Assembly: GCA_003427395.1 (NCBI GenBank)
Contig: BFEA01000015.1
Span: 558,267-622,266, forward strand
DNA from: Chara braunii
Taxonomy: Eukaryota; Plantae; Charophyceae
DNA length: 64,000 bases
Direction of reading: 5' to 3'
Part shown: positions 7,046 to 49,571 of the stretch, piece by piece
Layout: each line of letters begins with the position of its first letter
How positions within the stretch are numbered: the first letter of the stretch is position 1
Notes under the pieces: generated by a model
The model's database searches: none
The model's input: only the letters and a program-made list of their open reading frames with translations
What the model was told of the DNA's origin: nothing
Made by a program: the position numbers and the translations under genes

Positions 7046-7347
7046 GGACTTGGTTGCAGAGACTGGGATCCGCAGGCTGGCCCCCGTATGCCTGTCAGTG
7101 ATCCTGCCAGCGAAAACAAAATCTACATTCCACAGTTCCCCATGTGACTGTGCCCATTTTTTTTCTTAACCCCTTTCTTTTCCCAATGACAACCTGGGAC
7201 TTAGTTGCAGAGACTGGGATCTGCAGGCTGGCCCCCGTATGCCTGTCAGTGATCCTGCCAGCAAAAACAAAATCTACATTCCACAGTTCCCCATGTGACT
7301 GTGCCCATTTTTTTTTTTAACCCCTTTCTTTTCCCAATGAGAACCTG
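7046..7347. repeat. Tandem duplication, ~151-bp unit x2
   Basis: ggactt.gttgcagagactgggat...cccaatga at ~7046 and ~7197. Confidence 0.85.
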
Positions 7348-7552
7348 GTGACCGTCCCCTCATTTTGCTTGTGCTATTACTAATGATGTTATTTTCATGG
7401 GACGCTGGACCCGGTTCCCGGCAGGTGATGCTCCCGACCAATTGATGGCGCGGGTTTGCTTTGTAAGAATGCTATCAATTGATTCAGGCCTAAAAGTAGG
7501 CTATCATGTAGGGGCGACGGTCGCACAGACCGTGAGTCAGTCCGGTGGCGTC

Positions 7553-13925: not shown

Positions 13926-15070
13926 TTGAAATTTAAAACAAAAAAAAGACGGAAGATAGTCCACAACCGAGAAATCACGTACTAGGGTTTAGTGCTGCCC
14001 GTGCATCCTTATGATACAGCTTTAAATTTGTCCAAAATCCGCCGTTCAGGTGGTCCTAACAGTTCGCGAAAGCTGCCAGATACTAATGGCTTCAAAGTTC
14101 AAACCTATAGGATGCCCCCATTCAATGGTTCTTCTCAAGCGTCGACAACTGCTTGAGACAAACAAATCCAGGGGAGTTCCCACTGTCCCAGACAATTGCT
14201 TTCGCAGAAGGAAAAGCATCGGCAAAGTCGGAGGCTGGCCTCATTGAAAAGGAGGACTGATCACTCTTCAACCAGTCTGCAAAAAGCAAAAGGGAACCCC
14301 TTTAGACTCGGAGACATCCCCCTCGAGCCTTGCCTTTTTCTTTTTTTTCTTTTTTTTTTTTTCCCTCGCGATCACCCTGGATCATTCTGGTTTGGTCAGT
14401 CATTCCCCACAGAAAAAAAAACAAATTCTGTTTCTTTCCTTGATTCTTTTTGCAGACTGTTGGTTGCAATTGCACCAAGATATTTGTTTGAGTACAATCG
14501 GGTAAAGAAAAAAGAAGAAGAAGAAGAAGAAGAAAGAAAACCTCTGTACTGCGTGTGCAAGGAGATTTGTAGTCTATTCCTGTCCTTATCAATGCAAATA
14601 ATACCGCAACCTTCACTCTCCTGAACATACAGGCGGCAGCAATGAAAGTTCATTCAAATTTGCAGTTTTTTGTCACCTCCTTACTAGATGCCATTGGAGG
14701 CTTACACTTTTGAAAATGCCCCATCCCCTCCAGCGTCTTGAATGACCCTAGCAAGCTAGTAGTATAAGAATGCACCCGTGCGACTTCACATGCACAGATC
14801 ATGCATTGGTCGCCCTTGCCTTTGTTCTGCCCCTGTCAATAATAACGGTTCCCCTTGAGGTGGGTTTTCGACCAGACATGCCTATTACAATGATGCACTT
14901 TCACTTATAGAACAGAGGAGTGGGAGAGAGGTCACGTGAGGAAACAGGAGCCACGAACATACACGGAGGGAGGGAGAGAGAGGGAGAGAGGGAGAAGTGG
15001 GAAGGAAGGGGGGGAAGCAAGGGAATTCAAAATAGCGAGAACAGAGAGAGAGGGAGGGCAAGAAGAGAGC

Positions 15071-15076
<6 letters not shown>

Positions 15077-15165
<89 letters not shown>

Positions 15166-15166
15166 N

Positions 15167-15243
<77 letters not shown>
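15077..15243. repeat. (AG)n microsatellite
   Basis: Direct read. Confidence 0.97.
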
Positions 15244-15248
<5 letters not shown>

Positions 15249-16120
15249 GGTTGTTAAACATGGCACATGAAATGCAAGTGATCAGCACATTGGAGGCAAC
15301 AGTGTAAAATGACATATTAAGGCGAAATGTGTCTACAGAGAGATCTACAGATGGACAGGATGACAACAACAACAAAAGTGCACAAGGAACTTCAAAGACA
15401 AACATCTCTTTTCTTTCCATTTTCTCTCTAAGAGTTTCTCTTTTTGAGACGACGAAAAAGCGGGCATCTTAGCACAGCCTCCAGCTGCAGCTTAAAGCTG
15501 CAACTTGAGTCTGGAAGACTGTGGCGTCATTGACATAAAGGGAAAGTTCAAAATTCAAAATTTATAGTTTTAGTGGCTCATTCGCGAGATCTAGGCTGGG
15601 AGGTGTGACCGCCGACTGGTGGTTTTGCTCGACCACTAGCTCCATCAGCACCATTGCAGAACGTGTTGGCAATGCTTGTTTTTTCGATGACAACTCACAG
15701 TGAATTTATTTTTTTTTCCCTTTTTTTACAGTGTGATCTTTGCGACCCACAGCCGCGTGGTCTCAGAGTTGCACAAATTAAAATAATAATAATAATAATA
15801 GTAATTGAATGGAGAAAAGCAGCGGATAAACCGCTGGCGTCCTCTTGTCAAGCAAGCAGTGCCACCAGCAACGCTCTCAGAATGGTGTCTACAAATCACG
15901 AACGTCCAACTGACTCTCGTTATCGACAGCCAGCATCTCTTCATCCAGGCAAGTGGCGATGTCCACTGACCCTGATTTTATCTATGGCCAATATCTTTTA
16001 ATCCAGACACCTGGCATGACCTCCAGGTGAGCCTGTTTTTTTTTGTTTTTTCCCTGTTTTTTTTTTTCAAGGTGAGCCTGTTCAACCAACACCACAGTAT
16101 TTTTAAGTAATTTTTGGTTT

Positions 16121-16121
<1 letters not shown>

Positions 16122-16165
<44 letters not shown>

Positions 16166-17866
16166 GAAATGCACAAAGCTTATATTGCCGGGAAACGGGC
16201 CCGGCGTCCCTCACAAAATATTTGGAGCCCCAGGCTTGCTCCCTGCTACTCCGGCCGGGTGCAAGCCCTGGCTGTGGAAACAAAACCAACCACAACCAGA
16301 CACAACCCTACAATGAATTTACAAAGCAGACAATTATGTAACAGTCCCTCAGTCATCCGAAATTATTGCCAAACCCTGCAAATCGCCCTGCCACCCGCGC
16401 AGCAGGGGACTGCACCCACAGGCCCCAACTGCGGATCCAGTCCCCGCAAAACCCCCCCTCCTCCTCGTGATTCAGAGTGGATCGCACCACCAATAGAACC
16501 CAGACTCTCCAGTACCAAAACACCGACTCCCGCCACGATGATGTTTCTGCTAACCACCGGAAATACCCTACCACCCGCGCAGCAGGGGCCGAAGGCCCCG
16601 CAAACCCACCCACCTCCTCGCGATTTAGGGTATACCGACCCCCCAATCCGCATCTGCTCTCAAACGGAGTCCCAACGCCTATCAGATGATGTCAGAAACC
16701 AAAACCTACCATAAGAAGATGGAAACCAAGCCCTCTATTGCTAAACCCAATTATGTAACCACATCCAATTATCATCTCAACCCTGCAGCAATACCCTGCC
16801 ACCCGCGCGGCAGGGGTCGAAGACCCTGCAAACCCACCCTCCTCCTCGCGATTCAGGGTATTACCGCTCCACCCATCTGTATCGGCTCCCATAAAAGAAT
16901 CCCACTGCCCACCATGATGGGATCCCTGCGGAGCGACACTCGCCCAATCGCAGCAGATTTCCTATATCACACGTAAACAAAAACCCACGACAAAACAACA
17001 GGGCCAAAGCTGTCGTCTAAAAAGACAAAGCTAAATTCCAATCTGAAGAGATTAAGCCAAAATCTTAACAGTAACAACGCTCTATCGGTCAACACGAATA
17101 TGTGACTCTTACACTAATTACTGCTATACAAAACCTCGACAAAACGCACAGCAAAGCAGCAACAACAAGAACTATTCAACACAAACCAAAAGTACTAAAC
17201 CAAAACTGCACCAACAATCCAACACAAACGAAAAGCACTAAAACTCTCGTCTAAAGCGACGAGGCAGAATTCCATCCACTTCGATGTTTCACAGGACGGC
17301 GGAAGCCTCCAATCGCGTCTAAAACGCTGCAGCAGAGCATCCAAGGTCGATAGCAAACGCTCTACTCGATAATCTGGGGCGAGCCCAAGATCAACAACAG
17401 GAAAAACATGATCTCTTCTCTCCACGGCAGCAACTCCATGTCGACGCAACAAGAAGACGCGAATCTTCCAATTCACCGTACGCTCCATGTCAACAGCCAC
17501 CCTCCCATGAATCATACATGGGCAACACCCAATGTTCCGTATCAAAGCCAGGGGGTCGCCCCCTGACAAGTTCCATATTAGGTATATATGGAAGGCTCGC
17601 ACCCTGCCCGTCAACCACCCCCACATGCCACTCTCCTTCCAAGGCTGACAAGGATTCCCGGGCTTCTCCAGCAAAAGTCCCGACCAAGGCGAGCTAAAAC
17701 CGAGGTGTTTCACCACCATCGCGGAGCCTGCACCATCGCGCCCATGCGCCCTAACTGCCCACAGCGCTCCCTTGTTCGTGCCCGCAGCAAATTCTGGCAG
17801 GCAAGGCCAACGCACGTTGACCTCGCCGAGCGATCCTCCGCTGCGCGAGCCTCCAGCTTCTGTTGC
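16122..17866 (-). mobile_element. Poly(A)-tailed retroposed element (probably a LINE 3' fragment) with a non-RT ORF
   Basis: T-run 16123-16163, perfect 14-bp TSD taatttttggtttc at 16108-16121 and 17867-17880, open frame 17195-17866, internal repeats (ccacccgcgc..cctcctcg) at 16390-16870. Confidence 0.85.
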
Positions 17867-18703
17867 TAATTTTTGGTTTCTTGACATCAACTGGACCCGG
17901 TTTCCAGCAGGTGGTGCTCCCACCAATAGATGGAGCTGGTTTTTTTTGTGGGGAAAAAAAAAAAAAAAAAAAACCTTGGGTATCTGCATATCTGTTGATT
18001 TTGCCAAGCACAATAGAGGGCCTCGTTGCAGTACTCTCCACATGTACAAAGGACAAATTTAAAAAGAGATGGCAATTTATCTTTTTCCATGTTCTAGCGG
18101 TGGATTTAGTCTTATTCTGCAAATTTGGCAAGTAGTGCAGCCAGGCCCAGAGTCTAGTACTGCTGATAACCTGAAATCTGTATTTGGTCAGAAAAAAAGG
18201 TTATCTTGCAACCAGCCCATGTGGCTAGATGGTACAACCATTAACCTGAGCTGTGATCCTTCTTCCTCTTTTTTTTTTTTTTTTTTTTTTTGTTAACATT
18301 GACCGGATTCGTTAGGAATGGTGATAAGAGCAATGCCATCCCTACTATTTCAATCCGCCAATACTCCAGTCAATTGGTGGCGTATCAAACTGTGTGAGGG
18401 ATGCTGGACCCGTTTTCCAGCAGGTGATGCTCCCCACCAATAGATGGAGCCTTTCCCCAGGTGCTAGCGATGTCTGCTCTAAACAGCAGCGCTAGCACTG
18501 GAGGGTTATGTGTTAAAAAAAAAATAAAAAATAAAAAATAAAAAAAATAATAAAATAAAAAATGGTGGCGACTCTGGGGAGTGTCGCCTGCTGGAAACAG
18601 GGTCCAGCGTCCCTCACATGATCCCAAGAACGAACCCCCACAAGTTTGAAATTTGAATGTAGAAGCCCACCTCTTCAGCCCTTTCTGGGCCACATGAGAT
18701 GGA

Positions 18704-18739
<36 letters not shown>

Positions 18740-19169
18740 TCGCCCCCACCAGTGCTAGTGGTGACCTGAGATGGAATCCTGATGCAATCAGTTAAGCAAA
18801 ATAACTCGGGAGGTGGCAAGAGGTCGAGCATTGCAACCAGGAGGTTGCGGGTTCAATTCTGGCCGGCCATTACTATCCTACTGTGCACGCACTTGGTTGG
18901 TGCTACAACACCCTCTGTACTTGCCCCCAACCTAGCCCAGCAGATAGAACTTTGGGGAAGGTTTGGGGAGCACTGCCTGCCAGTGATGGGAAATCACTCA
19001 GGAGAGAAGTAGGGGCAGGAGCGGATGAGGGGTCAAGAGGGAGGACTGCTCTACAGNNNNNNNNNNNNNNNNNNNNNNNNNNNNNNNNNNNNNNNNNNNN
19101 NNNNNNNNNNNNNNNNTTGTGTAAGGGGGGGGGTGGGCTCCTACTCTGGGGGGGGGGGGGTAGTGACAA

Positions 19170-19204
<35 letters not shown>

Positions 19205-20190
19205 GGGACCGCTTAGCCTAAGGGAGCACTTAACTTACAGGGCATCATCATGGAGGGAGGTTAAGCCATCAGTACTTGGCCAATACATCGGACTCCGGCC
19301 CCTTATGTTAACGTGCCACGACTTTTGGGGCAAGCCCGGCATTGATAAATCTCTTTTTTTTTTTTTTTTCTTTTTTTTTTTTTGGCCTTCGTCGCATTTA
19401 CAACATCTGCGGCCGATGTATGGGTCAAGTACTGGGATTTTTTTTTATTATTATTATTATTAATAAAGGAACGCTTCCAGCACCAGGGATCCTGCATCCT
19501 CCTTAACGGCCCCACCCTTACATTTCAAGTCACCTCTGAGGGCTCCCTAGAGATTTTCGTCCTTTTGCCTGGGCCACCCTTATTTTTTAGCGGCGGACCC
19601 TAACAGCCGAAAATGTGGAAACGTTTTAGAGTTCGTTTTTTTCGTCATTAGGGTGTGGTGAAACGGCGATTTTGTAAAAACCCTTACATTTGTAGTGGTG
19701 TCGAACGAGGCCCAAATTCATAACCAAACTCAGAGTTAAAAATCAAAACCCTTTTTTTTTTTTTTAATCATTAAAAATATATATATGTTCGACCGAGGGA
19801 AAGACCCGAACATGTTCCACGTGCTACACAGGATATACTATCACCGTAGTATCACGTTTCCCATGATGTCATGTAGGTAGCCAAATTAGGCTGCACTGTA
19901 GTTACTCTTCCATCTGTCCACTTTCTATCTTGGAAGGTGGGCCTGGCAGCCGGCTGTCAGTACAATCATATATAGGTTCTGTCAGTACAATCATATATAG
20001 GTTCAAACACGCCACTGCAATGTTCAGGGACGCTGGACCCAGCACTTTCCAGCAGGTGCTGCTCCCCACCAATAGATGGAGCCTCCCTGGGAGTGACAGT
20101 GGTGCCTGCTGTTATCAGCACCCGTACGGTGCCGTACCATCCATCTGGGTTGTTCTTGAAAAAAAAAAAAAAAAGGGAAAAAAGAGGAGC

Positions 20191-30083: not shown

Positions 30084-30174
30084 ATTCAACCCCACCGGCC
30101 AAAAATCCTCGGCCACACCCCCATTTACTCTGATTGACGTTCGCGGGTACTGGATGACGCCCGGGGTGTGAGGT

Positions 30175-32270
30175 TGGTGCCAGAGTTGATATGTTCCGTC
30201 TTCGAGGTTTCCTTGGGACGAACGTAAATTTTATTGTTATTTTTTTAATTTGTTTTTGGAGATGTTTGTTTATTTTGAGATAGGCTGGCACCCAGGCGCC
30301 ACCACTCGGCCAACAACAATCAAAACCAAGCAAAGGGGCGGGTTCGAAATCAACCTCGAACCATGGTCAAACCGGGTCAAGGGATGGATAATCATGCGGA
30401 GATGGCCAACCACCCCTTGTACCTCGTCCCTCCCCCTTTGAAGGTTCCCATCTTCTCCAAAGATGAAACAGACCCACGTACTTGGTTGGCTGCCTTGAAG
30501 GCCCAAGGTTGGACAAACCAGTTGTTTCGGGAACAGATTCCTGGAAGGTAAGCTGGAATCAAGTTTGAATGGTATGGACGAAACCTTTATACCAATTGAC
30601 CGACCTTCCAAAGAATTTTCCTTGAACGATTTGATCACATCGCGTCGAGGCAATGTTTGGGCCTGATCAAAGAATAGACGCAGCAGCCCCGGGAGACCCT
30701 GGCTAGATACGCGGAGCGATTCACCTACCTAGCTGAACGCTCCCGGGTTGACGAGAAGATGGTACAAACGGATTTCGTGAGGGGATTATCCGACTCCCGC
30801 TCGCGAAAAAAGATATGTAAAAAATGTAACGGTTGTATCCCGATTCAACACACCTTGACCGAGCTAATTCAATATGCTATCCAGTACGAAAAGGAGAACT
30901 ATAATGTAGGCTTGGATTCAAAATCAGACGAGGATGACCCATCCGGTGTCCGACGCAATAGCTAGTCCTCTACGGCTCGGATGTTCGAAGATCGCTTCGG
31001 ATTGGGGCCGGCCAAGAAAAATACGGACCGAAGAGCACCGTCCTCCTCCTCGGCCTCCAGACACCTTTTACAGGCACAAGGAGTGCCGGACGTAGAAGAA
31101 ATAACGATGAAGGAGGTAATCGCACAATGCGTTACGGTCGTGGCGCCCTTAATGAAGTTTGTCAAAGGGCTGCAGTGGCTAAGAGGCAACAAGTGGCCAT
31201 GGCGGCTGGGAGCCTGGGACCGCTATGCCACGACCAGCCTTAGCCGGGACCTCTCCGCCATGCGATGTTACAACTGCAATCAGCCAGCACATAGGATTCG
31301 TGAAAACCTAACAAAAAAAATTGTTAGGTTTGCATGAAAATTTTTAAAGATTCTGATAGTACATTTTTTAGGCTTCCTACATGAACAAAATTTTATGTGA
31401 AGTAAATTAACTGCAAAAAAGGAATAGAAAAGTTTTTTTTGAGAACCACTAGAAATGATGAGGTGAGAAGCAAGGTTTTTCACAAGAAATCACTACCTTG
31501 CAAATCATTATTTATTCAGGAACCAAAATATCCCATTTTTTTGCTTATCTAAAAAAATCATATTTATAGTTTTATAATGTAGGTAGCACGGTGAACCTTT
31601 TCGGGGGTTTCTTAAACACGCACACATTCTCTCCTGTTCATTCGCTTGGATATGTTCTCTCATACATGGACGAATACATTGTTTTTTTGTGTTTTTTATT
31701 AAATAATTTTCTATTTTTTTATTTTAAATTGTGGTTGGCTAAGAATTTTAAGATGTCTCCGAAGCAAAAGTTGTTTGAATTCTTCTTTTACATAACATAT
31801 ATTTCTTGAAAAGGGTTTTATAGTTAACTTAAAAATGGAGTTATCTATAAACTCGATTTCGCAGAGTCTGTTTTTTATCGAACTGTTGAAAACGATTTAT
31901 AGTTCTATAAATGAGTATTCACTCAAATTGTTTTTTTTTAACATCTTTCGAGGTCGCCTTGCAATCCTTAATATTGTCTTGTTTGAGCAATGTTTTTTGT
32001 CAATCTACTAAGAACGACATATACTCTTATAACATGCTCTTTGCTGGAAAAAAAGTTCTTGCACATTTTGAGAATCGCTAGAGTTTTTGCCTATTTTTTT
32101 ACCTCTTTTCTCGAAAAACAGTTAGAAATGTTCTCTTTTATGTGTCAAAAATAACAGTCTGACTTTTACTTTTTCATTCTATAAAAAATGTTAGGTTTTG
32201 TGGTTTTGTTAGGATTTCACGAATTCAGTGTTCAAGCCACCTCGCAAAAGATTATCCATATACAACTGAT
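30175..32270 (+). mobile_element. Decayed gag remnant of an LTR-type element related to 37885-46817, with PBS-like site
   Basis: gtgaggt|TGGTGCCAGAG at 30168-30185. DPRTWLAALKAQ resembles AGAWLATLRAQ. Zinc knuckle CYNCNQP..HLAKDYP is split by the 31289-32231 insertion. Confidence 0.7.
31289..32231. mobile_element. AT-rich MITE inserted in the gag zinc knuckle
   Basis: TIR acataggattcgtgaaaacctaacaaaa vs ttttgttaggatttcacgaattcagtgt (28 bp, 4 mismatches). Knuckle codons resume after it. Confidence 0.75.
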
Positions 32271-33956: not shown

Positions 33957-34240
33957 GAAGTTGGCCGCGGCATCTCCAATCTGTACTTGGAGCACGACCT
34001 TGCCTTTGCTTGGGTAAGAAGGGTCGTGAAACTTCGGGATTTTAGGGCTGGAAGTTTGCCGCGACATCTCCAATCTGTACTTGGGCTCTTTGTCTTAGCC
34101 TGTGTATGTTTCCTGTTCGTTCTGACCTTGGCTCTTTGTCCGCTGGTGGTGAATTCCTTCTTGGTAACGTCGATAGTCTCACGGTAGTACTTAAGTTGTT
34201 CTCGCCTATTCGTTCGGTCCCTATTCCTTGTAACTATTCA

Positions 34241-34290
34241 GACCCCTGACGAGTTCCGGTTGGCGGCCGGACGAAACCCCTCGTCGGGTC
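34241..34290 (+). ncRNA. Type I hammerhead ribozyme in the 5' pseudo-LTR
   Basis: GACCC-CUGACGA-G(U)UCCGGU..GCCGGAC-GAAAC-CCCUC-GUC-GGGUC: stem I, catalytic core, stem II, minimal stem III, GUC cleavage triplet. Confidence 0.88.
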
Positions 34291-34800
34291 GCTCCGCCAT
34301 ACTACGCAATGCTTACTTTTCGATGTTGTGGCGGTGCTTTATAATCAATTTTTAGGCCTATTGGTCGCGTTTCGGGATTTCGGGACTATGTGCTTTCCCC
34401 TCTGTTTTCTTGTTCTTTGTCTTCCTTCTCTTCTCTCTTCTTCCTCATTTTGTCTTCTTCTCCTTTTGCTTACGTAACGCATTTTTGTTGTTGTTGTGGA
34501 CTTGTCCTTATCAACTTTTCGCGCCGTAACCACCGTAAGGATTGTATTACGGTCGTGTCGCTGCGCTGACCGAGTACGTCGATTGTCAACGTGGGCTCTC
34601 TCTTTCCTTTTTTTTCCTCTCTCTTTCCTTTTTTTTTGTTTTTTTCTCTCTATCTTCTCTCTTATTATCTTCCTTATTAGTTCTCTTTTTGGTTTATGAT
34701 CATGGCGGCACCACCACGTGATGGTTGCTTCCGCTGTGGTCAAGTGGGTCATTGGTCGTGAGAATATCCTCATCCGAGGAGCAATAATCATAGGCCGCCC

Positions 34801-36329: not shown

Positions 36330-37884
36330 GTGGTTTAATCCCGTGGGCTGAAAAATTACGGTCCTATTTTTTGTCCATAGTCGATGGTGATGGTGATCTT
36401 TTTCGTTGCAAAGGTCCTCTTGTCTACGTCTGACTGTCTGCTTGGCACAAGCATGTCTATGTGGGATCGACTGATTGGGCACTTGATATTCGCTGGTGTG
36501 AGCATGTCTATCGCACTTGCAATAGTACTGTTGTCGAACGTGGCGAGAGGAACCATACACTTTACAATTGGCTTCGACGCTGTGGTCCGGAGCACTACGT
36601 GACGCTTCCTCTGTTTCGCTGTGAATCATCTGATCTTCTTGATTGGGAGCGGTTCATTATTCATAAATTTAATCATTTTCTTAACAGTAAGGGAAAACTC
36701 GTACGTTGGGTACATTCACGACCGGAAAAACGGGAACGGGCTAAACAGAGACGGAAGAAGCTCCAACTTGTGGTACCGGTGGTTGAGGACTTGTCGAGTA
36801 ACTATGCTCATCATCTGCATCTATCGTTTGTCACCAGTGAGGGGGTTTTGTCGGCCAGTTTGCTTGGTCTACTTAAGGACGCTAGGGTGAGTGGACGAAA
36901 GAACCTTATTGTATGGTGTGTTGGTGGGGAAGTACTCATCGACAAGTGAAAAATTGTTAAAAGATGTTTTGGTGGATCGGTTGTCGAATCTATCTTTGGT
37001 GTTGGTGCTTTGAAGAGGAGTTATGGCTAGCTGAAGGATGGGACCACACCGCATTTCAGTTCCATTTCGTATTTTTGTTCCACCTTGCTTTGTCTAAAAC
37101 CAACGTTACTTGGTTTTCTAACGAAACCCGGAACACGTGCATGTCTTCCTAGGTGGGAGTTGGACAAGTTGGTTGGACTCTATTCGGCGATCCGGTGTTT
37201 TACGGAGAAACAAACTCGCTATCAGTTATGCTGCTAGGTGTCTGGAGTAATTAGGCGGCAGTTTGGTATTAATGTTCGAACCCGTCTCGTTGTTCGCATA
37301 ACCTATGATGCTTGTCTCAGCAAATGTGCCATTAGGGAGACGTGCAATGATACCTTACGTAAGATGGATGTTCCGTACTGCATGAGTGAGATGATGGCCC
37401 GGAGGTTAAGGGTGGTATGGGTGAAAAATCGAACTCTCGGTGACATCTTGTTCAATTTTTGTGATGTGTCTAGGCGGGGTGATCACTATTGTGATTGCGC
37501 CAGAAATGAGTTGTTGTTTAGTCGCATTAATGAACACGTATGTTTCAGGTTAGCATCTACTGATTTCGTACCGCCCTTTCTGCGAAATTCTCGTAATGTT
37601 CCACGTCCCTCTCGTGTCACCTCTCGCCGGAATGTGGTTCGTCAAATTGTTGCTTCGTTTGATGTTGTGCGGTCTCTTCCAAAGTTGAATCCGGAGAGTA
37701 TAGGGATTTGCTTACTTGATTCTTGCTTCAACAATACCACAGTTTACTATGATTGTGCCTCGGGGATTGAAGGTCTCTTCCAAAGTGTTCTCATTGATCA
37801 CAATGCTAGCAATACATTGAACCACTGGTATGTTGTCCGGTGGTCTATAGACAGAGTATGGAAACATTGTTTTTGAAGAACCCT
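36330..37884 (+). pseudogene. PLE-B ORF2 N-terminal half: GIY-YIG endonuclease and linker
   Basis: GPLVYV*LSAWHKHVYVGST..IRWCEH..LDWERFII..FLN matches GIY-YIG motifs. ORF 37238-37876 is homologous to PLE-A ORF 50418-50759. Confidence 0.82.
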
Positions 37885-38884
37885 TGTGACGAACTACTTT
37901 CTGAAAGGCGCCATCTTCTGCGCAACCGGGATTGGGGGTACACAGAGGGATCGGGGATAAATTGCATGGCGGCCCCGCCTTCTTGATTTTTCGAAGTTTT
38001 CTCCTTGGTCCTTCGGGAAGAGATGGTGGCGGTTATGGACCTTGGGACAATAGGCCCTCGCCTTAGCGAGCGCGGAGGGGGAACAACTTCTGCTATGGTC
38101 TTTTTCGCTTTTCTTTTCCTTTTCTTTTGTTTTCAAATAAGGCGTTCGTCTTTTTGGCGCAATAATCGCGCGGGTAATTTCTTCGGAAGTTTTGAATTTA
38201 GAACGAGCCCATGCGGGCTTTCGGAATTTCTTTTCGTAATTAGGACTTTAGTTAGAGTAGGAAATTGGGTACGTTGTAATTTTTGCCCGTAACTGCACAT
38301 CGCCTCTTGCTTGCACGCGCGCTTTGCTGCACAGGGACCTGCGCTCTGTTCCCGCTGTGCCTAAATTCTAATCTCAACTGTAATCTCTTCTTGTTCCTTC
38401 CCCGCTACGCAGGTGTAACTGTAATCTTCCCCGTTCTTGAAATTCCCTTCCGCGTCACTGCATGCGCACTCTACCTCCAATTTCATTGGCCCGATCGTTG
38501 CATGGTTGGATTGAAGCGTGGAGTGAGGCTACGTCCCCCACGCCGCGGCCCAGTCATGCACTCGTAGGCACTTCCTTTCTCTATTCTTTCCTGTTCCTCT
38601 GGCAATCCCGACTATTGCGCGCTGATTAGCAAGCTATAAATTCTGCAAGCTCGATTAATTTTCTCTCTAATCTACTTAGGAGTTAGCACGGTCGAGAGAA
38701 TCGGCTAACGAGCAGAAAGACGGTGAGTAGAGAGTTGGGCGATCTGACGAGCTGGTGCTGAGTGCGCGGGGTTGACGTGGGGCCGCGAGGGACTGTGGCA
38801 CGTGGGCGAACCTGGCTTGTACGCTCGGGCTATGCGGGGTGACGACTCTGTGAGGTCTTTGGGATGCACGGCGACGAACTGCCC

Positions 38885-38923
<39 letters not shown>

Positions 38924-40354
38924 GGATATGGTGGAACAGTGTCTTTTCCTCCCTCCTTTCTATGAAAATTTTGATTCCAACGTTGGCCAATTTTGTTGCG
39001 GCATTTTTCGGATTCCTGTGTGAATCTTCTCAGATCTCCTTATTGGAATGCATGTATGTATGTATGGGGTCGAACGATCTCGCATCCTTTCTCGCAATTT
39101 GTCTTCGCGTTTTCATTTCGTTTTGATCAGTAGACTAGCGTGGTTTCAACTTCATCGCTTTTTCGGCATTCGGCGTCGCAGCGCGGGTTTCGATCTACGA
39201 ATCTGAGTTCTCGCGGATCTGGTCAGTGCGCTCACTGCACGGGATTAGCCCAATCACTTGCAAGAAAATACAGGAATTGTTGGGAATGTATGTCTGTTCT
39301 TCGAATGTTTGATGACCCTTTCCTCCAATGCATAAGGGTATATAACCAGGGAGGGGTTGTTCTGGGAACGAGGTTGCATGCATAATCGGGCCAAACGCCC
39401 GTAGATTGCTCCGCCATTAGGACGCGCAGCCTAGGACTTAACTAACTAGCCAGTTCGTACGCGCGTGGAAGACAGTAATCCATCAACGGATTTGCCATCT
39501 ACACGCACACATGCAAAGGCTAGCTACGATCCCGCCACGTAGGAATGATGTGTGTAAGTGAGTCCCGTTGATACGGATATGGCGATCGAAACTCCTTTTT
39601 GGATCACCGACCTCGAAAGCCTGAGAGATCCCGAGTACAGGACATATTGGGAAAGGGAACAGATCCTACGACAACAAGTCCGACAGCAGCGGATCAGACG
39701 GCAACAAAACTTGTGGAACCTTGATTACCCCTGCCGAGCTGAACACGGGCGACTAAGTAGGGGCGATTTCCAGCTGGCAATCAACCGGGACTCCCAAATT
39801 CCTGAGTATCCCGATTGTAGATACCAGCAATACTTTATCACCCCAGGCTTCGTCGCTATCACGACTAACTTTCCCCCCCATTGCATCGTCCTCCCGTATC
39901 ACCGATTGCTAGTTACCCCCTGGGACTCCATATCCCGATTCAGGCCCCGGCCTCCGTGCCCCGAGTGCCAACAGCCCAACGAGCACGAACGGACGGAGGC
40001 CACGCATCAGACTCCTCCCCAGAGAGAACGTCGAGAACCCAGCCCGTCCTCCTCATCAGACTCTGACTCTAAGTTCTGCGTCAGACGACAGAGGTACGAG
40101 CATTCCCACAGCGACGCCCGCAACACCCCGTTCGTGCACCCGGCTCCTTCCCGGCCCCGGCCGTGGGAACGGTGCCCACCCCAACTCTGAGCTAGAGGAA
40201 CCACTTGCACTTCTACCCCTAAAAATTGACACAGGAGATTTCAGTTCCGACCTGGAACTCCACCCCCACTTTCCAAAAATCCTTGGCACACCCGTGTTCG
40301 CGCTTCCAGGCCCACTAACACTCCGAAAACAGGAAGTCGCGCTGGGCGTGAGGT
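37885..40354 (+). repeat. 5' long terminal repeat A1 (2470 bp)
   Basis: Near-identical to 45625-46806 except for a ~1.26-kb segment (~38669-39929) missing from the 3' copy. Confidence 0.92.
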
Positions 40355-40366
40355 TGGTATCGGCGC
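40355..40366 (+). promoter_or_regulatory. Primer-binding-site-like sequence (tRNA-iMet type)
   Basis: TGGTATCGGCGC vs canonical TGGTATCAGAGC (10/12), immediately after A1. Confidence 0.7.
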
Positions 40367-40521
40367 CGACACGTATTAAGACAAGGGATTGACAAGTTGC
40401 TTGGCTCTCTAGTTCAACCGATCTGGCGACCCCAAAATGGGGACGGTCTGCGCAGAGGAACGCGTCGACACGCGAACCTGTAGTGACAAGAAGCAGGTCT
40501 GCGGGCGGATCAGCAGACGAC

Positions 40522-43017
40522 ATGAATGCTAATCAGGCAAACGCCAATCAGGCCCCAGCCAATCAAGCACAAGGCGTGGCAGGGGGCGGCCTGGGGCTTG
40601 CGCCTCAGCCCGTGCCTCAGCCCGCACGTGCCCGCGCTCCAACAACCCCGCCAGATCTGTATTTACTCGATCCCACGCACCACCTGGCAGGAGCATGGCT
40701 TGCCACGCTCCGAGCGCAACAGTATGATAATGATGAAGCTGGGATTAACATCCCAGCCCGATTAGGAGGCGACGCCCATCACTGGTTCAGCACCTACGTG
40801 TGGACTGACCTTCCTACCTTTGAGAGGGACTTCTTACACTGATTTGACTACATACATCCAGAGGAAGCGTTCTTTATGATCAAAGACAGAGTGCAAAAGC
40901 CCCTTGAGTCTGTTGCAGAAGACCGTAGTCGGTTCTACCGATTGTTTGTAAAATCTCAGAGGGACGAAAAGGTAGGAAGAGAGTTCTTCATAGATGGACT
41001 TCGAAGTAGAGCTATACAGGCTAAGATACGGAAACAGTTCTCCCCCATCACCTTCACCTTGACGCAAATCATGGACGTAGCAGAAAAGATGGAGCGAAAG
41101 TTCGCTGCTAGCTTGAAGTTCCTCGAGGGAGAAAATCACACTAAAGAAGGTGACTCTACGAAACTAACTCGTGGAAGGATGGAACTAGCAGCCCTGCAAC
41201 ATAAGTTCGAAAATATGGGCTTCGTGTCAGGCCCTGTTACCTACCTGGAACAGGTGGCAGCCTTACAGCGCCCTCTCGATCAGGGAGCAGGACCATCGAT
41301 GCCCAAGGCGGCTGCACAGGCACCCGCCCCGACGGAGAAGACAGAAGAATCGAATGCGGTGCTGGACCTTACACGTATGTTGGTTAGCCTCATGCAAGAA
41401 AGCAAAAAGGAACAGCGCGAGCACAATGCCCACATGGAGTCGCTGATGCGTTTCATGCGTCCCATTAACGTTCGCGCTGACCCTTTTGTCACCCAAGCGC
41501 CTGCTCCCGTAGTCGCGGGAGCTGGCGGAGGACCGGCCCAGAGGACTGACACGTGTTATGCCTGCCATCAACCCAGACACATGGCCCGAGATTGCCCCCA
41601 GCGACAAGTAAGAATAGGGGCAGCCCCGGCAGCTGCAGCTCCCTTAGCTAACGGGCGTGGACGGGTAGGAACCATGGTAGAAAAAACGGACGTGGCAATA
41701 CCAAACATAGGGGTAATCGAGGAAGCCGTAGAGCTCATCCCACTGGATCAATTCCTCTCCTTGGGATATCCGGGGCTTGGGATGATAGGGGCAATTCGGC
41801 CCGCGGACGATGAGCACGAGATTTCCGAATGGCGACCATCCCCGGGGGAGATGGAATTCGGCAGTCCTGAGTTCGTCATCGGAACGATCGATGTTTTGGA
41901 CATTGTCCGAGCTCTAAACCACAGCATTCCGCTTCCGATCGGCCACCTGTTGTCCATATCAGAACATGCCAATGATCGCATGCTCCAGCATTGCAAGGCC
42001 AATCGAAAACGATTCGCACTCGCCAAGCTGGCAACGGCCAAGGGGAAGGCCCCCGTAAGGGAGACAAAACCAGATACACCTGGACCCTCAGAGCCTGTGC
42101 GCCTGGGACTTCTCCAAAAAAACGACCATTTTCTGGCATTTCTACGCATCAAAGCTATCCCGTGGAAGTCTGCGGAGTGCGACGTAGAGATCTGGGGAGT
42201 CCCATACAGTGCGATCCTTGATTCCGAGACAGCAGTGTTGGCAATATCCCTGCGAGTAGTGGAACGGGCAGGAAGAAGGAAGGATTTGATCCCACCCAAC
42301 GACGGAGACCGTTTGATCTCCGCCGATGAGGAGAAGATCACAGCTGTAGAAAAAATGACAAACGTCGCTTTTAAGTTGGGAAAAGTCCACGCCTTGGGTG
42401 ACGTGGTGGTTCTTAATGTGAACTCGTATGACGTACTCATCGGACTGCCTGTTTTAAACGCCCTGCAGGCTAATCTAGACTTTGAGCGGCGGGAGGTGGT
42501 TATTAAGAACACCGGGGGTAAGCCGTACGCAGTCCCCATGCGCGTCACCCTCCGCACGACTACCAACCCGCCACATAGATCTTACCCAGAGGTGGGCGGG
42601 CCGATTCGTACAGTCACCTGGGACGGACGCCTAGAGGACTCGGAGACTAGCAGCGAAGAACACGTGTCCCCGCTCCCCAAGTATTCGGAAAGCGAGGACG
42701 AGACAAACCCGGTGATTCAAGAGTTGATACGAAAGGTAACTCGTTACCCAGTCCGACAGAAAACGATGAAAACGTTCGTGCTAGCTGAAGAAAATGTCCA
42801 ACGAACTCGAGCTCTGATCATAGGAGAACCCCTGGTACAGGTGTCAAGGATGCCCGACTCTTCGGAACCCCCTCGGACCCTGTACGAGGGCGCTACTCCC
42901 TTGCTTCCCCGATACGTAGATAAGCAGTCCTTTTGCGACGTCATAGAACCCCCTCCCCGATCGCTTCTTACCGCAGACAAGGAGATACGATTGTTGCGTC
43001 AAGGAGCGGAAGTATAG
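40522..43017 (+). pseudogene. gag-protease (frameshift near 40840)
   Basis: Capsid-like region, zinc knuckle CYACHQPRHMARDC, aspartic protease AILDSETA..YDVLIG. Confidence 0.85.
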
Positions 43018-43086
43018 GCTCCGGAACCCCCTGGGTGCCCCGAAGCCTCGCTGTTTGATGTCGGGATAAGAATCGCTGAGAAATCG

Positions 43087-44784
43087 GTGGATCCCTGGGA
43101 TATCACGGACGGGATAACCACCGAAGAACACCTGGCCATCCGAGAGGAGGAAGCCCAGATTGTAGCCACCGTGTTCTCGTGGCGGTCGGACAACTCTTTC
43201 ATCTCTTCCCCGCCGCCCCGGGACTCTAAGGCAGTACGTACCAAACACGTTACAGTCGATATAGACGGACGACCTTACGAGTTGCACGTGCCAGAATACA
43301 TGCCCGACCGGACCCACCAACTTATTGCAGAGATCGTACAGGAATATCGGGGTGCTATTAGCATTGATGACGCGGACATCGGGTTATCCTTAATAATCCA
43401 ACACGAGATTCAGACCGGCAATCACCCGCCGATTCATTGCAAACCGTATCGATACTTATCGGCAGAACGAAAGGAGGCACTCGAGCGAATCCGGGAATTC
43501 GAGGCTAACGGTTGGATAGAGCCCGCTACAGGTCCTTGGTCCTTTCCGGTAGTTTGAGTTCCAGAAAAGAACGGATCGATTCGCATTTACATTGATTATT
43601 GGAAATTGAATGACATCACGATCAAGGATGTGTACCCCCTCCCTCGGATTGATGATTTGCTGGATGCGATTGGCTGTGCGAATTATTTTAGTAAATTTGA
43701 TATTCGGCACGGGTTCCACCATATCCTTGTGAGGGAAGAAGATCGAGCGAAGACGGCATTTGTCTTATTTGAGGGCACGTGGCAGTGGGTTCGATGCCCT
43801 ATGGGTATATGCAATGCGCCGGCGACTTTTCAGCAGGCAATGAATGTCACTTTCCATAACTTCGTAAACAAGACTAGGTTAACTCAGGGCATGATCAATT
43901 TTTGCGTTATCGTGTACATGGATGATATTCTGGTGTATTCTGAATCATTCCATGGACACGCGCAGCATATTGAATGGACACTTGGCGCGCTGCGGGACGC
44001 CGGTTTCAAGATTGCATTGGAGAAAAGCGAATTTTTCTTGTCCGAGATCTCGTTCCTGGGCTACGTGGTAACCCGAGGAGGCTTGAGACCGGATTCGAGG
44101 AAGGTCGAGGCTGTTCGAGAAGCACCCACGCCCACGTCATTGACGCAGGTTCGAGCCTTCCTGGGACTGGTCTCGTACTACCTACGGTTTATCAAGGGCT
44201 TTGCGGCAATCGCTCGGCCCCTGACAAATCTCCTGCGGAAGGATCAACCGCTGAACTGGGACACAGAGTGTGAGCAAGCCTTTTGCATGTTAAACGAGGC
44301 CCTGGCCTCGACCACTATTTTAATCTGGCCCGATCCCGAGCGCCAGTTCCTATTCATTACTGACTGGCAGTCGGACGCTATCTCCGCTATCCTAGCTCAG
44401 AAGGGGAAAGACGGGCAGGAGCACGTGGTCGAATATGCTTCGAGGACGGTGCCGGACGAAAGGAAGAACGACTCAGCGCCACAAGGAGAATGCTGCGTTG
44501 TCGTCTGGGGAATCCAACACTTCCACCCATATCTCTACGGGCAGAAGTTCCTCCTCGTAACTGATCACGAGCCATTGCTGACCCTCAAAAAGCTGACGAA
44601 CTACACTGGAATGATTGGGCGATGGGTGGTGAGGCTGCAGAAGTATGACTTCGACATCCTCCACCGAAAAACGGAAAGGCACGGGAACGCCGACGGATTG
44701 ACACGTCTGCACCGGCCTGGCAAGGTGCCACGCAACAAAGAGATCACTATCCGGAGCAGCCCAAGGGACCCGGGTACGACCTAG
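43087..44784 (+). pseudogene. Reverse transcriptase + RNase H (Ty3/gypsy type), in-frame stop at 43555
   Basis: PWSFPVV, YPLPRIDD, KFDIRHGFHH, PMGICNAPATFQ, YMDD, ITDWQ, TDHEPL, NADGLTR. Confidence 0.93.
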
Positions 44785-45624
44785 TGAAGGTTCTCCGTTG
44801 GCAGGCGAAGAAGTGACACGTGTACTTATGGCGGCCCAGAGAGAAGAAGACGCAGAGGGCCCTCTCTCTCCTTCTTCCTCTTCTCTATTCCCCCTCCCCT
44901 TCCCCCCGTCCCTCAGTTCGAGCTCGTAGCGATTCGGGACATCGGGCTACGTCCCCGTTCCCTATCCTGCCGTCCCCTTGATTACATCACCTTCCGGCAG
45001 ATCGATACTTCGCGCTCTTTCCCCTCCAATCCTTTTCCTTCTTCAACCTTCCACCAATTCTACGCCACACGCCTCGTCGCCGACGTATATCCGCACCCCG
45101 CCGCCCAATGTGTCTCTCCTTCCTTCTATCTCCACGTCCTTCTGTTTAGCGCCGTGTGGCAAGACCAGGACGCCATCGAAGTCTACTGCATCATCACGGG
45201 AACTATCCCCGTGTGTGCAGATCATGAGCAGTTCCGAGCGGCGATGTTTCGCACCTTCTCAACCCTCTATCCCGATTATCTTGGCTCCCTCCCTGAAGGC
45301 GGAAATCGCTTCCCCCGCATCCATCGCATCATCAGGTACTAGGAGCTCCCTGAAAAAGTGATGGGGATGGCGAATTTTTTGCTGCCTCTCCCAAATGATC
45401 CTCCCCCGCCCATCCCCGCCATCTTCCGACGTCCCCACCCTTGAAACGAGGGCGGTTCGAATGACGTGTCGAAAGGATGACGTCCACACTCTTATCCTAC
45501 GGTAACGACACGTATAATATGGGTGGGATTGTAATTCTTCTCCCTTTTTTTTTCTTCTTCGAGCTTGGGAGATGTGGGTGCAAGTGGGAGCGTGCACAAG
45601 ATGGAACCCCCTGGGCGTCACATT

Positions 45625-46817
45625 TGTGACGAACTACTTTCTGAAAGGCGCCATCTTCTGCGCAACCGGGATTGGGGGTACACAGAGGAATCGGGGATAA
45701 ATTGCATGGCGGCCCCTCCTTCTTGATTTTTCGAAGTTTTCTCCTTGGTCCTTCGGGAAGAGACGGTGGCGGTTATGGACCTTGGGACAATAGGCCCCCG
45801 CCTTAGTGAGCGCGGAGGGGGAACAACTTCTGCTATGGTCTTTTTCGCTTTTCTTTTCCTTTTCTTTTGTTTTCAAATAAGACGGGTAATTTCTTCGGGA
45901 GTTTTGAATTTAGAACGAGCCCATGCAGGCTTTCAGAATTTCTTTTCGTAATTAGGACTTTAATTAGAGTAGGAAATTGGGTACGTTGTAATTTTTGCCC
46001 GTAACTGCACATCGCCTCTTGCTTGCACGCACACTTTGTTGCACAGGGACCTGTGCTCTGTTCCCGCTGTGCCTAAATTCTAATCTCAATTGTAATCTCT
46101 TCTTGTTCCTTCCCCACTACGTAGGTGTAACTGTAATCTTCCCCGTTCTTGAAATTCCCTTCCCGCGTCACTGCATGCACACTCTACCTCCTATCTCATT
46201 GGTCGGATCGTTGCATGGTTGGAGCAAAGCGTTGAGTGAGGCTACGTCCCCCACGCCGCGGCCCAGTCATGCACTCGTAGGCACTTCCTTTCTCTATTCT
46301 TTCCTGTTCCTCTGGCAATCCCGACTATTGCGCGCTGATTAGCAAACTATAAATTCTGCAAGCGCGATTAATTTTCTCTCTATATCCCGATTCATGCCCC
46401 GGCCTCCATGCCCCGAGTGCCAGCAGCCCAACGAGCACGAACAGACGGAGGCCACGCGTCAGACTCCTCCCCGGAGAGAACGTCGAGAACCCAGCCCGTC
46501 CTCCTCATCAGACTCTGACTCTGAGTTCTGCGTCGGACGACAGAGGTACGAGCATTCCCACAGCGATGCCCGCAACACCCCGTTCGTGCACCTGGCTCTT
46601 TCCCGACCCTGGCCTTGGGAACGACGCCCACCCCAACTCTGAGCTAGAGGAACCACTTGCATTTCTACCCCTGAAACTTGACACAGGAGATTTCAGTTCC
46701 GACCTGGAACTCCACCCCCACTTTCCAAAAATCCTTGGCACACCCCTCTTCGCGCTTCCAGGCCCACTAACACTCCGAAAACAGGAAGTCGCGCTGGGCG
46801 TGAGGTTGGGCGTCACA
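45625..46817 (+). repeat. 3' long terminal repeat A2 plus terminal 11-mer B
   Basis: Copy of A1 with internal deletion, ending gtgaggt+tgggcgtcaca. Confidence 0.92.
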
Positions 46818-46821
46818 CCCT

Positions 46822-48030
46822 GACTTTGTAATTTGCCACAACGAAAAGTCGATCATTGAGTCTCGTGCTGCTTGCTTCCGTGACGAAGGTTTCGGACGAC
46901 TAGGTAAGTGGAATGGGGCTGGGAATCTGGGGCAGGCATACTCGATACCCAAGCATAAGGATATTGCCAAGTGACGCCCGATCTGTCCCACCCATTCAGA
47001 GTGCGGGGTTCGAGCGAGTAAGAGGGCGGCACAAGGCATCAATCAACTACTATGGGAGTTACCCCCGGCCATCAACTTTAATCTCAAAAGTATGGCCGAA
47101 CTGGCTTCCACAGTTGGGAGAGTTAACAAGGAGCTGCGGAAGGGTGAGTGTTTTTCAAGTGCAGCATGTGACATCAAAGAAATGTTCTGTAATTTACCAC
47201 ACGTCGCCATCATGCAAGCGGTCCGATGGGTTGTGGACTTCTGGGCGTTTCGGGGATGCAAGGGGGTTTTGGTCAAGCAGAGGGGGAAAGGGGCTAAACT
47301 GAGATTTGGGGGTGTACAGCTTGGCTGGAATTCAATTCCATTTGATGTCCTTGTTGATTTTGTCAAATTTGACCTTGACTGTACGTTCTTCAAAGCCTGT
47401 GGGAAAATGCTGCAACAGAAGGTCGGGATTCCAATGGGTAAATCGTCTAGTCCTGCTCTGGCATGCCTTCTGTGTGCCTATAACGAGTTTCATTTCCTTT
47501 CGTCTCTTGGATGTGACAAAAAATTAGTTTGTGGCATACGAATGGTAGATGATGTCTCTGTCTTTGTGCGATATAAGGATGGGGACCCAAATTCTCTGTC
47601 AACAACCCAGTCCATTTTGAACAGGTTTCGACACTGTTATGACTCTAATCTTGTGTTGGAACTTACGAGTGATAGTGATTGTTGGGACTTTCTGAGGTGT
47701 GTGTTGAAAGTCCTTGATTGGCCATGGGGCATTCAATGTGTCGCCCTACATAAGAATCGAAGGCATTTTGGTGAGGACAAGTTGTGTTTCCAAAATCTGC
47801 AGGATTTCAACTCTTACTCTTGCAGGGAGCAGAAAATGGCGGTGATCGGATCCTGCCTACATAGGGCTAAAGCGTACACCACGATGGCTGGCATGGAGGT
47901 GGCTTTTCTCTTAGTACCCTCAAGAATGAACTCAGAAAGAGAGGTTTTCCTGACGCCTATTTTGATAATGCTCTGCGGAATTTTTCAAGGAAATTCGGGG
48001 GCATTTGGGAGGAATGGGTCACTTATCTGA
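46822..48030 (+). pseudogene. PLE-B ORF2 C-terminal half: Penelope-type reverse transcriptase
   Basis: YSIPKHKD..RPI, DIKEMFCNL, QKVGIPMGKSSSPALA, RMVDDV, WDFL. Confidence 0.9.
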
Positions 48031-48614: not shown

Positions 48615-49254
48615 TGTACTTGGGTCTGTGGGACTGTTTCTATTTTGTTTTAGTTTCTTCGTAATGTTTTTTTCGATCAATTTTTTTTTTCTGAAACGCA
48701 TTGGGGTACAGGTGGCTATCAGAGTCCGCGTCAATTTGGGACATTCGCATACCTTTCCCAGGGTTGTAGACAGGTGGCGAGCGGAGTAAGCGGTACCCTG
48801 TCTTCTTCTGTTCTCGGCCGCTAATTGGTGTCATGATTCTCTCGTCTAAATCCGGGTCTATCTCTGGGTTAGCTTCGTGTACCTTTGCTTGGGTAAGAAG
48901 GGCCGTGAAACTTCGAGATTTTAGGACGGGAAGTTGGCTGCGGCATCTCCAATCTGTACTTGGGCTCTTTGTTTTAGTCTGTGCATGTTTTCTGTTGGTT
49001 CTGGCCTTAGCTCTTTGTCCGCTGGCGGTGAATTGAATTTTCTTCTTGGTAACGTCGATAGTCTCACGGTAGTACTTAAGCTGTTCTCATCTATTCGTTC
49101 GGTCCCTATTCGAACCAATAGGCCGAACGAATAGATGAGAACAGCTTAAGTACTACCGTGAGACTATCGACGTTACCAAGAAGAAAATTCAATTCACCGC
49201 CAGCGGACAAAGAGCTAAGGCCAGAACCAACAGAAAACATGCACAGACTAATCA

Positions 49255-49304
49255 GACCCCTGAGGAGTTCCAGTTGGCGGCCGGACGAAACGCAGCGTCG
49301 GGTC
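49255..49304 (+). ncRNA. Type I hammerhead ribozyme in the 3' pseudo-LTR
   Basis: GACCC-CUGAGGA-G(U)UCCAGU..GCCGGAC-GAAAC-GCAGC-GUC-GGGUC. Confidence 0.85.
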
Positions 49305-49571
49305 GCTGTGCCATACTACACAATGCTTACTCTTCGATGTTGTGCCGGTGCTTTATGATCAATTTTTCGGCCTATTGGTCGCGTTTTGGGATTTCGGGAC
49401 TATGTGCGTTCCCCCCTTTCTTCTTTTTCTCTGTCTTCCTTTCTTTCTTCTCTCCTTTGTCTTATCTTCTCTCTCATCTTTCTTCTCTTCTCTCTTCTCC
49501 CTCATTCTGTCTTCTTCTCCTTTTGCTTACGTGATGCATTTTTGTTGTTGCTGTGGACTTTGTCCTTATCG

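Follow-up and report, generated by a model that had tools for sequence, protein, structure and literature searches.

The retrotransposon and its ends

We analysed a window of 64,000 nucleotides (nt) of Chara braunii DNA, in which the stretch under study (positions 37885–46817) is a retrotransposon with long terminal repeats (LTRs) flanked on both sides by CCCT, a 4-base-pair (bp) target-site duplication (TSD). From left to right, the order is CCCT, a 5' LTR (A1) ending ...GTGAGGT, the primer-binding site (PBS) TGGTATCGGCGCC, frames for gag, protease (PR), reverse transcriptase (RT) and RNase H (RH), the block GGAACCCCC-TGGGCGTCACA-TT, a 3' LTR (A2), TGGGCGTCACA once more, and CCCT. The lineage to which this element belongs is Ty3/gypsy by its genes and fails two textbook features of that group, namely equivalent TG...CA LTRs and a polypurine tract (PPT) at the 3' LTR. 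Its right integrated end, the 11-mer TGGGCGTCACA (B), lies outside the 5' repeat: a single internal copy faces the left end head to head (CACA-TA-TGTG), and the only other copy forms the right terminus. Parts of this had been claimed in an earlier, sequence-only reading, with which our inspection agreed on the TGTGACG start, the CGTCACA end and the 4-bp TSD, on a 5' repeat that ends GTGAGGT at the PBS with no CA, and on a second copy of the terminal 11-mer ahead of the 3' repeat, an arrangement that recurs in 9 further loci.

Comparing the right-hand region with the window by BLAST, we found that LTR homology stops at ...GTGAGGTTGG (40357 in the 5' copy, 46809 in the 3' copy), a shared end that can also be read as ...GGGCGTGAGGTTGG at the same two positions. 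Beyond it, the 5' copy runs into TATCGGCGCC, which belongs to the PBS, and the 3' copy into GCGTCACA and then the TSD. The TGG of the PBS TGGTATCGGCGCC also forms the last bases of the LTR homology, such that repeat and PBS overlap by these three letters. The internal 11-mer, the TT and the start of the 3' LTR together make the palindrome CGTCACA-TT-TGTGACG, and the chance of an exact 11-mer match at one fixed place is P = 2.4e-7.

Ten elements on separate scaffolds were compared, comprising the window copy, three close copies retrieved through gag-PR protein matches (L001–L003) and L005–L010, with gag-PR proteins ~48–86% identical to that of the window copy; L004, an internal fragment only, was left out. 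On the 5' side all ten read flank, TGTGAC...GGGCGTGAGGT (...GTGAGGT) and then TGGTATC(G/A)GAGCC, and ahead of the 3' LTR all ten read GGAACCCCC-TGGGCGTCACA-T(A/T)-TGTGAC. The right end is readable in eight (the 3' LTR is truncated in L006, and an assembly gap intervenes in L010), each of which reads ...GGGCGTGAGGT-TGGGCGTCACA followed by flank. The two-letter spacer is TA in 9/9 other copies and TT is private to the window copy, giving a palindromic CA-NN-TG site, CGTCACA-TA-TGTGACG (TT in the window), in every one of the ten. The layout A1-PBS-ORFs-B-tt-A2-B proposed from the window alone (ORF, open reading frame) thus held throughout, whereas its TT spacer turned out to be specific to one copy.

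In none of the ten does GCGTCACA precede the PBS, the 5' LTR ending ...GTGAGGT directly on the PBS and GCGTCACA appearing only after the 3' LTR. Nor does any carry a normal PPT abutting the 3' LTR, as the 22 nt ahead of that LTR are GGAACCCCCTGGGCGTCACATA in all copies and the closest purine-rich run, AAGATGGAA, stops 18 nt upstream. This junction block is unchanged across subfamilies whose internal DNA is only ~70–80% identical. Perfect 4-bp TSDs flank five of the eight copies with two readable ends (CCCT, TCAG, AGGT, TTCC and ATGG), one more shows a 3/4 match and two old copies have no clear TSD, so that the short TSD of Ty3/gypsy elements is present and the TSD-less insertion of DIRS/Ngaro/PAT elements is not seen. 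Together, these comparisons confirm the split-end layout as a feature of the lineage and not a one-off.

We also tallied the contexts of B, allowing at most one mismatch, across 336 kb of Chara DNA, and found 9 instances of internal-B-TA-A, 8 of A-B followed by flank, and none of either A-B-TA-A or internal-B followed by flank; one further match was an unrelated chance match. Two more occurrences differ by more than one mismatch and were found separately, these being the internal copy of L009, which contains an N, and the end of a solo LTR that lies in L002 on the minus strand. The solo LTR consists of A+B, as expected for recombination between A1 and A2. At 19829–19830, L009 carries an extra T at the LTR/11-mer joint (GAGGTT-TGGGCG, compared with GAGGT-TGGGCG), which arose either by mutation at a later time or through imprecise joining.

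Identity between the paired LTRs of a copy ranges from 88% to 99.1%, which points to a lineage whose activity was long-lasting and continued into recent times. The highest value belongs to L010, in which LTRs at 6945–9326 and 17589–19782 are 99.1% identical over 2194 nt, the end of its 3' LTR being lost in the assembly gap; the layout is thus compatible with recent transposition.

Table 1. Features of the element in the Chara braunii window (window coordinates).
Feature	Position	Strand	Remarks
Left TSD, CCCT	37881–37884	+	Same letters as 46818–46821
5' LTR (A1)	37885–40354	+	Starts TGTGACG, ends ...GGGCGTGAGGT, no CA; ~2.5-kb full-length form; collinear with both LTRs of L001–L003
PBS, TGGTATCGGCGCC	40355–40367	+	Adjoins U5 directly; lineage form TGGTATCGGAGCC or TGGTATCAGAGCC
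gag (zf-CCHC) and protease (RVP_2) frames	40483–43017	+	In pieces; 48–99% identical Chara proteins
Reverse transcriptase and RNase H	43606–44784	+	RVT_1 1.8e-27; RT_RNaseH 2.3e-25
Breakpoint of ~3.05-kb deletion	44889–44899	+	Integrase and most of ORF3 gone; from alignment to L001
Conserved hairpin, GTGCAAGY-GGGA-GCKTGCAC	45578–45597	+	Upstream of internal 11-mer; 7/7 aligned copies
Invariant GGAACCCCC	45603–45611	+	Before internal 11-mer, at the expected PPT site
B1, internal copy of right integrase end, TGGGCGTCACA	45612–45622	+	11-mer sequence match
Spacer TT	45623–45624	+	TA in nine other copies; between CA of B1 and TG of 3' LTR; missing from both integrated ends
3' LTR (A2)	45625–46806	+	~93–95% identical to A1; 1256-bp deletion at ~46382 relative to A1 38670–39925
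B2, terminal TGGGCGTCACA	46807–46817	+	Right end of integrated element; 11-mer sequence match
Right TSD, CCCT	46818–46821	+	Pairs with left TSD

The window copy is an old, defective member of a Ty3/gypsy lineage that is very abundant in Chara braunii. A loss of 1256 bp from the 3' LTR explains the unequal lengths of its two repeats (2470 nt and 1182 nt); full LTRs in L001–L003 measure ~2.6 kb and include the segment equivalent to 38670–39925, which rules out an insertion in the 5' LTR as the cause. A second deletion emerged from the alignment to L001, where window 38890–44899 corresponds to 7793–13793 and window 44889–46382 to 16843–18349, leaving 13794–16842 (~3.05 kb) without a counterpart. 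It is because of this internal deletion that the copy has no integrase, and a domain scan of the reading frames revealed nothing integrase-like between 44785 and the 3' LTR. Replacement of the integrase by another ORF is ruled out, given that the ~3 kb holding integrase and ORF3 have been deleted. We looked for a paralogous empty site for the window insertion and found none. Within the 5' LTR, an open frame of 210 amino acids (39558–40190), which lies partly in the segment deleted from the 3' LTR and has no Pfam match, is probably not a gene.

Coding content, RNA signals and abundance

Full-length members of the lineage carry ~2.6-kb LTRs, a putative initiator-tRNA-type PBS, gag-PR-RT-RH-integrase (IN) and an extra ORF, ORF3. 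Domain matches in the window comprise zf-CCHC and RVP_2 (40876–43017) and then RVT_1 and RT_RNaseH, and the Integrase_H2C2 and rve domains of an H2C2 plus DDE integrase are found in L001 (14208–15434), L003 (13211–13951) and L009. The last of these is near-intact (gag-PR 9806–11692, RT-RH 11683–13734, IN 13727–15031, then ORF3), and the PR-RT-RH-IN order of Ty3/gypsy elements is seen on inspection of the window, L001, L003 and L009. Ranked against solved structures, the RT-RH of L009 best matches the Ty3 RT 4OL8 (2.4e-70) and also Ty3 Gag-Pol 7Q5B, with caulimovirus and retroviral RTs lower, and it is on this ranking that its Ty3 affinity is based; by the same kind of match, the integrase is closest to those of prototype foamy virus (PFV) and Ty3. 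No tyrosine recombinase family was detected in any frame scanned of the window, L001, L003, L008 and L009. By gene content, then, the lineage is a Ty3/gypsy-type DDE-integrase retrotransposon. The Ty3/gypsy-type RT and the DDE-like staggered insertion that the sequence-only reading had put forward are both borne out, the latter by the DDE integrase of full-length copies, the 4-bp TSDs and the lack of a tyrosine recombinase in the frames scanned.

The gag-PR protein search matched solely Chara braunii proteins. In a representative search with RT-RH, the sampled relatives at or above 50% identity (5 looked up) were all from Chara, the sampled matches at 37–43% identity were animal gypsy elements, and two at 42–46% came from ENA contigs. 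ORF3 follows the integrase in L009 (15926–16963), L008 (16299–17477), L003 (15282–16397) and L001 (15913–16836), and nothing of it is left as an ORF in the window. Its predicted product has a conserved N-terminal domain of ~190 amino acids, a long tract rich in glutamate and a basic tail rich in Ser and Pro. It has no Pfam match, and a search of the ESM Atlas with the N-terminal domain gave only streptophyte clusters at scores <0.85. A part for ORF3 in the extra joining step discussed below is conceivable.

Either TGGTATCGGAGCC or TGGTATCAGAGCC directly follows U5 in all ten copies, a PBS that we take to resemble the plant initiator-tRNA type; no tRNA genes were found in the window or in the Chara DNA examined. 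About 15 nt upstream of the internal 11-mer lies the hairpin GTGCAAGC-GGGA-GCTTGCAC (AGCAAGC-AGGA-GCTTGCT in other subfamilies), found in L001 at 17517–17536 and at equivalent sites in L002–L007, with one compensatory T:A to A:T change between subfamilies. This hairpin may be a plus-strand priming or packaging signal. Additionally, a 10-nt palindrome, GACACGTGTC or near copies of it, occurs just after the PBS (L001 9280, L002 9295, L003 8395) and again ~110–130 nt before the 3' LTR (L003 16988, L007 17815, window ~45487–45500); it could pair the 5' part of the RNA with the 3' part or dimerise two RNAs. A search of the elements for a complement of the B1 region or of U5-PBS elsewhere in them found none.

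Reads and contigs were aligned to window 37700–40700 from two RNA raw-read runs and two genomic DNA contig runs. In the two genomic runs, summed contig depth is ~1.7–2.2e5 across the PBS and the final 130 nt of the LTR, compared with ~14 on unique flank, so that very many copies have this end architecture in common. Position 40364 of the PBS is A in nearly all genomic copies (TGGTATCGGAGCC). No loose ends at the LTR/PBS border were among those listed in this alignment. Depths of 3e4–2e5 in the same runs also mark window 40225–40426, 38508–38608 and 38710–38810, blocks common to a very large superfamily of Chara repeats.

Elsewhere in the window, a fragment of a more distant relative (30164–31337; gag ~31–34% identical) has the same U5 end, GGGTGTGAGGT, adjoining a different PBS, TGGTGCCAGAG, with its 3' end outside the window; the CA-less U5/PBS junction therefore reaches beyond the lineage studied here. 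A second gypsy-type RT at 10225–11297 is ~33–46% identical to that of the element, and no LTR pair was detected for it in the window. Direct repeats at 34003–34434 and 48882–49448, ~90% identical and ~15 kb apart, enclose the gypsy insertion, and the flanking ORFs at 37238–37876 and 47092–48030 have no Pfam match.

How the right end could be rebuilt

In the reverse transcription of LTR elements, the right end of the cDNA is set by the 5' end of the minus strand, i.e., by the base beside the PBS, and the left end by the plus-strand primer. An RNA of the form R-U5-PBS...B-TA-U3-R holds B only upstream of U3, so that B can be copied solely at the left cDNA end, and because the minus strand starts at the PBS, the right cDNA end stops at ...GAGGT and has no CA. 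Linear variants in which the primer is retained, the first jump takes another course or the shared GGGCGT motif is used were worked through, and A-PBS-int-B-TA-A-B came out of none of them. Since the textbook two-jump scheme cannot regenerate the right end, a copy of the 11-mer has to be placed after U5 by an additional step of end joining.

The integrated structure is exactly what would result from a cDNA with B-TA-A repeats whose ends are united (A|B-TA-A) and then opened at CA^TA^TG with loss of TA. That the cDNA repeat has the form B-NN-A and that the two ends of the cDNA must meet, as proposed in the sequence-only reading, follows logically from the anatomy. Going one step further, we put at about an even chance the reading in which both ends of the cDNA become joined or bridged before integrase cuts at the CA-TA-TG palindrome. 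Under this joined-end reading, the linear cDNA would end at the right in ...GAGGT and not in ...GAGGTTGGGCGTCACA(TA), and B would reach the left cDNA end either by a plus-strand start at B or by the minus strand copying an RNA primer equal to B. The joining or bridging of the ends would place this left-end copy after U5. As B and the PBS share their initial TGG, a 3-nt overlap would be available between the U5 end, with the copy of the tRNA CCA kept, and the complement of B, which would form a 3' overhang on the bottom strand of the left end once that strand had copied an RNA primer equal to B. An 8-nt fill-in would then yield a right end ...GCGTCACA-3'OH (...CACA) abutting TA-TGTGACG, and a single integrase cut on the other strand would leave two standard processed ends, both of which would be inserted with a 4-bp stagger and with TA lost. 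The ends could be united covalently, in a 2-LTR circle, or only by annealing, in a nicked synapse; either would lead to the same product and fit the data. The earlier interpretation is thereby partly supported: its permuted, junction-type logic holds, and the covalent circle it favoured is a candidate and only one of several ways to unite the ends.

Several observations weigh against the joined-end reading. An A-B-TA-A junction or other joined-end molecule appears nowhere in the 336 kb of Chara DNA, a metagenome scan for TGGGCGTCACATATGTGACG returned 0 matches, and the RNA reads on 37700–40700, a stretch around the 5' LTR in which such a junction could not show, are sparse, fall on both strands and allowed no molecule starts or ends to be called. 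Three nucleotides of overlap are few for a join that relies on a template, and the sequence upstream of B is not a PPT from which a plus-strand start could be placed. A symmetric 2-LTR circle, moreover, has two identical palindromes, and a cut at the second should give A-B-TA-A-PBS-int-B (1-LTR circles should give A-PBS-int-B). The alternative cut product was seen in 0/10 copies (P ~0.001 if both cuts were equally used), which would mean that the enzyme reads more than 11 bp (GAGGT-B as opposed to CCCCC-B) or that the reaction is confined to the cDNA ends.

One alternative is a linear route in which RT makes an extra template switch and integrase uses the ordinary left end together with an internal A-B^TA-A site, the terminal LTR being discarded. 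Here the minus strand would leave the 5' edge of B1 (nascent ...CCA-3') for the TGG of U5/PBS and recopy U5-R-U3, thereby generating an A-B-TA-A cDNA end. Such a route accounts for the TGG start common to B and PBS and requires no ligation, and the GACACGTGTC palindromes beside the PBS and ~110–130 nt before the 3' LTR could hold the template sites together. However, it calls for a programmed jump on 3-nt homology only and wastes ~2.6 kb of synthesis, it still requires int-B to be discriminated from A-B, and it has left no tandem A-B-TA-A relic in the 336 kb. We regard it as unlikely, though it is the strongest of the alternatives.

The sole use of the terminal palindrome and the extra T at the A|B joint of L009, as imprecise joining might leave, could alternatively reflect assembly after integration. 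In this scenario integrase would cut in the left-end palindrome of a linear B-TA-A...B-TA-A cDNA, the TGTGACG end and an 11-bp stub of B would be inserted concertedly, and host end joining would ligate the free U5 end to the stub, giving the same final structure. An 11-bp stub is a poor integrase substrate, though, and every event would leave a chromosome break to mend; in addition, 7/8 joints are exact and the L009 region has other mutations too. These points make assembly after integration improbable in our view.

Still less probable is a second primer, by which the terminal 11-mer would be copied from a nucleic-acid primer with the 3' end ...UGUGACGCCCA, internal B being its binding site, and which would imply a Chara tRNA or small RNA with the 3' end ...GUGACGCCCA. 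The reverse complement of B does end in CCA, like a tRNA 3' end, and B sits where a priming signal is expected, but the site abutting U5 is a different and conserved PBS (TGGTATCGGAGCC) in 10/10 copies, synthesis from a primer at B1 would run into the internal region instead of U5, and the tRNA acceptor stem would be unusual. The probability that we attach to it is accordingly very low.

A one-off rearrangement, tandem insertion or misassembly of a canonical TG...CA gypsy element, which the two large deletions of the window copy might have suggested, has virtually no chance of being correct, refuted as it is by 9 further elements that have the same junctions but lie on other scaffolds, between different flanks and TSDs. 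Equally negligible is a DIRS/Ngaro/PAT-type element arising by tyrosine recombination of a circle, which shares the split-direct-repeat layout A1...B1-A2-B2 and is contradicted by a DDE integrase, a protease, a zinc-knuckle gag, 4-bp TSDs and the absence of a recombinase domain from the tested frames.

Relation to known systems and significance

Compared with canonical Ty3/gypsy elements (Metaviridae), the Chara lineage shares the zinc-knuckle gag, the PR-RT-RH-IN order, a Ty3-like RT, an H2C2 plus DDE integrase, a putative tRNA-type PBS after the 5' LTR, TG...CA integrated ends and a short TSD. It differs in that its LTRs are non-equivalent, the CA-bearing end being encoded once, upstream of the 3' LTR at the usual place of the PPT. 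Split direct repeats are known from Ngaro/PAT-like tyrosine-recombinase retrotransposons, including TOC1 of Chlamydomonas. These have the same A1-internal-B1-A2-B2 order, which can be read as a B+A LTR opened at the B|A border, whereas in Chara B is only 11 bp long and is accompanied by a DDE integrase, TSDs, a protease and a zinc-knuckle gag; the term split direct repeats is in use in PMC7192593 and PMC13465315.

The nearest precedent is offered by PFV and HIV-1. The PFV integrase cleaves the palindromic LTR-LTR junction, which has 2 nt between CA and TG, one cut giving both processed ends (PMC1180852). HIV-1 (human immunodeficiency virus type 1) integrase likewise cleaves a palindromic LTR-LTR junction (PMC1905944; see also PMC4372172). 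The Chara site resembles these 2-LTR-circle substrates in its head-to-head CA-NN-TG palindrome and, as described for PFV, in the loss of 2 nt on integration. In retroviruses, however, each LTR has both ends, the junction forms in circles only, and whether the route is used at all is optional or debated. The genome of the Chara lineage itself encodes the palindrome, and no other attachment site is available to the U5 end, which makes some joined-end step appear obligatory.

Outside retroelements, the copy-out-paste-in bacterial insertion sequences (ISs) of the IS3, IS30 and IS256 families use abutted ends 2–3 bp apart as an active substrate for a DDE enzyme. Left and right ends are abutted in the same manner in Chara, though the ISs are bacterial DNA transposons whose transposase makes the junction, with no RNA-templated internal copy. 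Hepadnaviruses, in which the direct repeats DR1 and DR2 and a short terminal redundancy serve genome circularisation, resemble the Chara lineage by analogy only, through direct repeats of 11–12 nt and a very short terminal overlap bridging the minus-strand ends; they prime with protein, have no integrase-dependent cycle and differ in genome layout.

Under the two-jump model, each LTR is assumed to carry both integrase ends, a rule which the Chara lineage breaks in every copy examined. This rule-breaking lineage fills a large part of a ~2-Gb genome and still leaves integrase-type TSDs. No earlier account of a split-ended LTR element with a DDE integrase came to light in a literature search, which was not exhaustive. 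Tentatively, and with a confidence slightly below even, we propose that in a whole, highly successful DDE-integrase LTR lineage the U5 attachment site has been relocated from the LTR to the interior and that the lineage depends on an obligatory joined-end substrate templated by an internal head-to-head copy of both ends. A joined-end route in retroviruses was proposed in the 1980s, dismissed, and later revived for foamy viruses. If the proposal is true, a retroelement can integrate chiefly by way of joined cDNA ends, and bacterial IS circle junctions and the debated foamy-virus route would have in this lineage a counterpart that is eukaryotic and works through RNA. If confirmed, it would also connect LTR elements that use a DDE integrase with the split-repeat logic known from tyrosine-recombinase retroelements. 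The lineage provides a natural system in which to see how integrases recognise internal palindromic sites. For the annotation of charophyte genomes, programs for LTR detection will set wrong bounds for such elements or miss them if they insist on TG...CA in each LTR or on a PPT by the 3' LTR.

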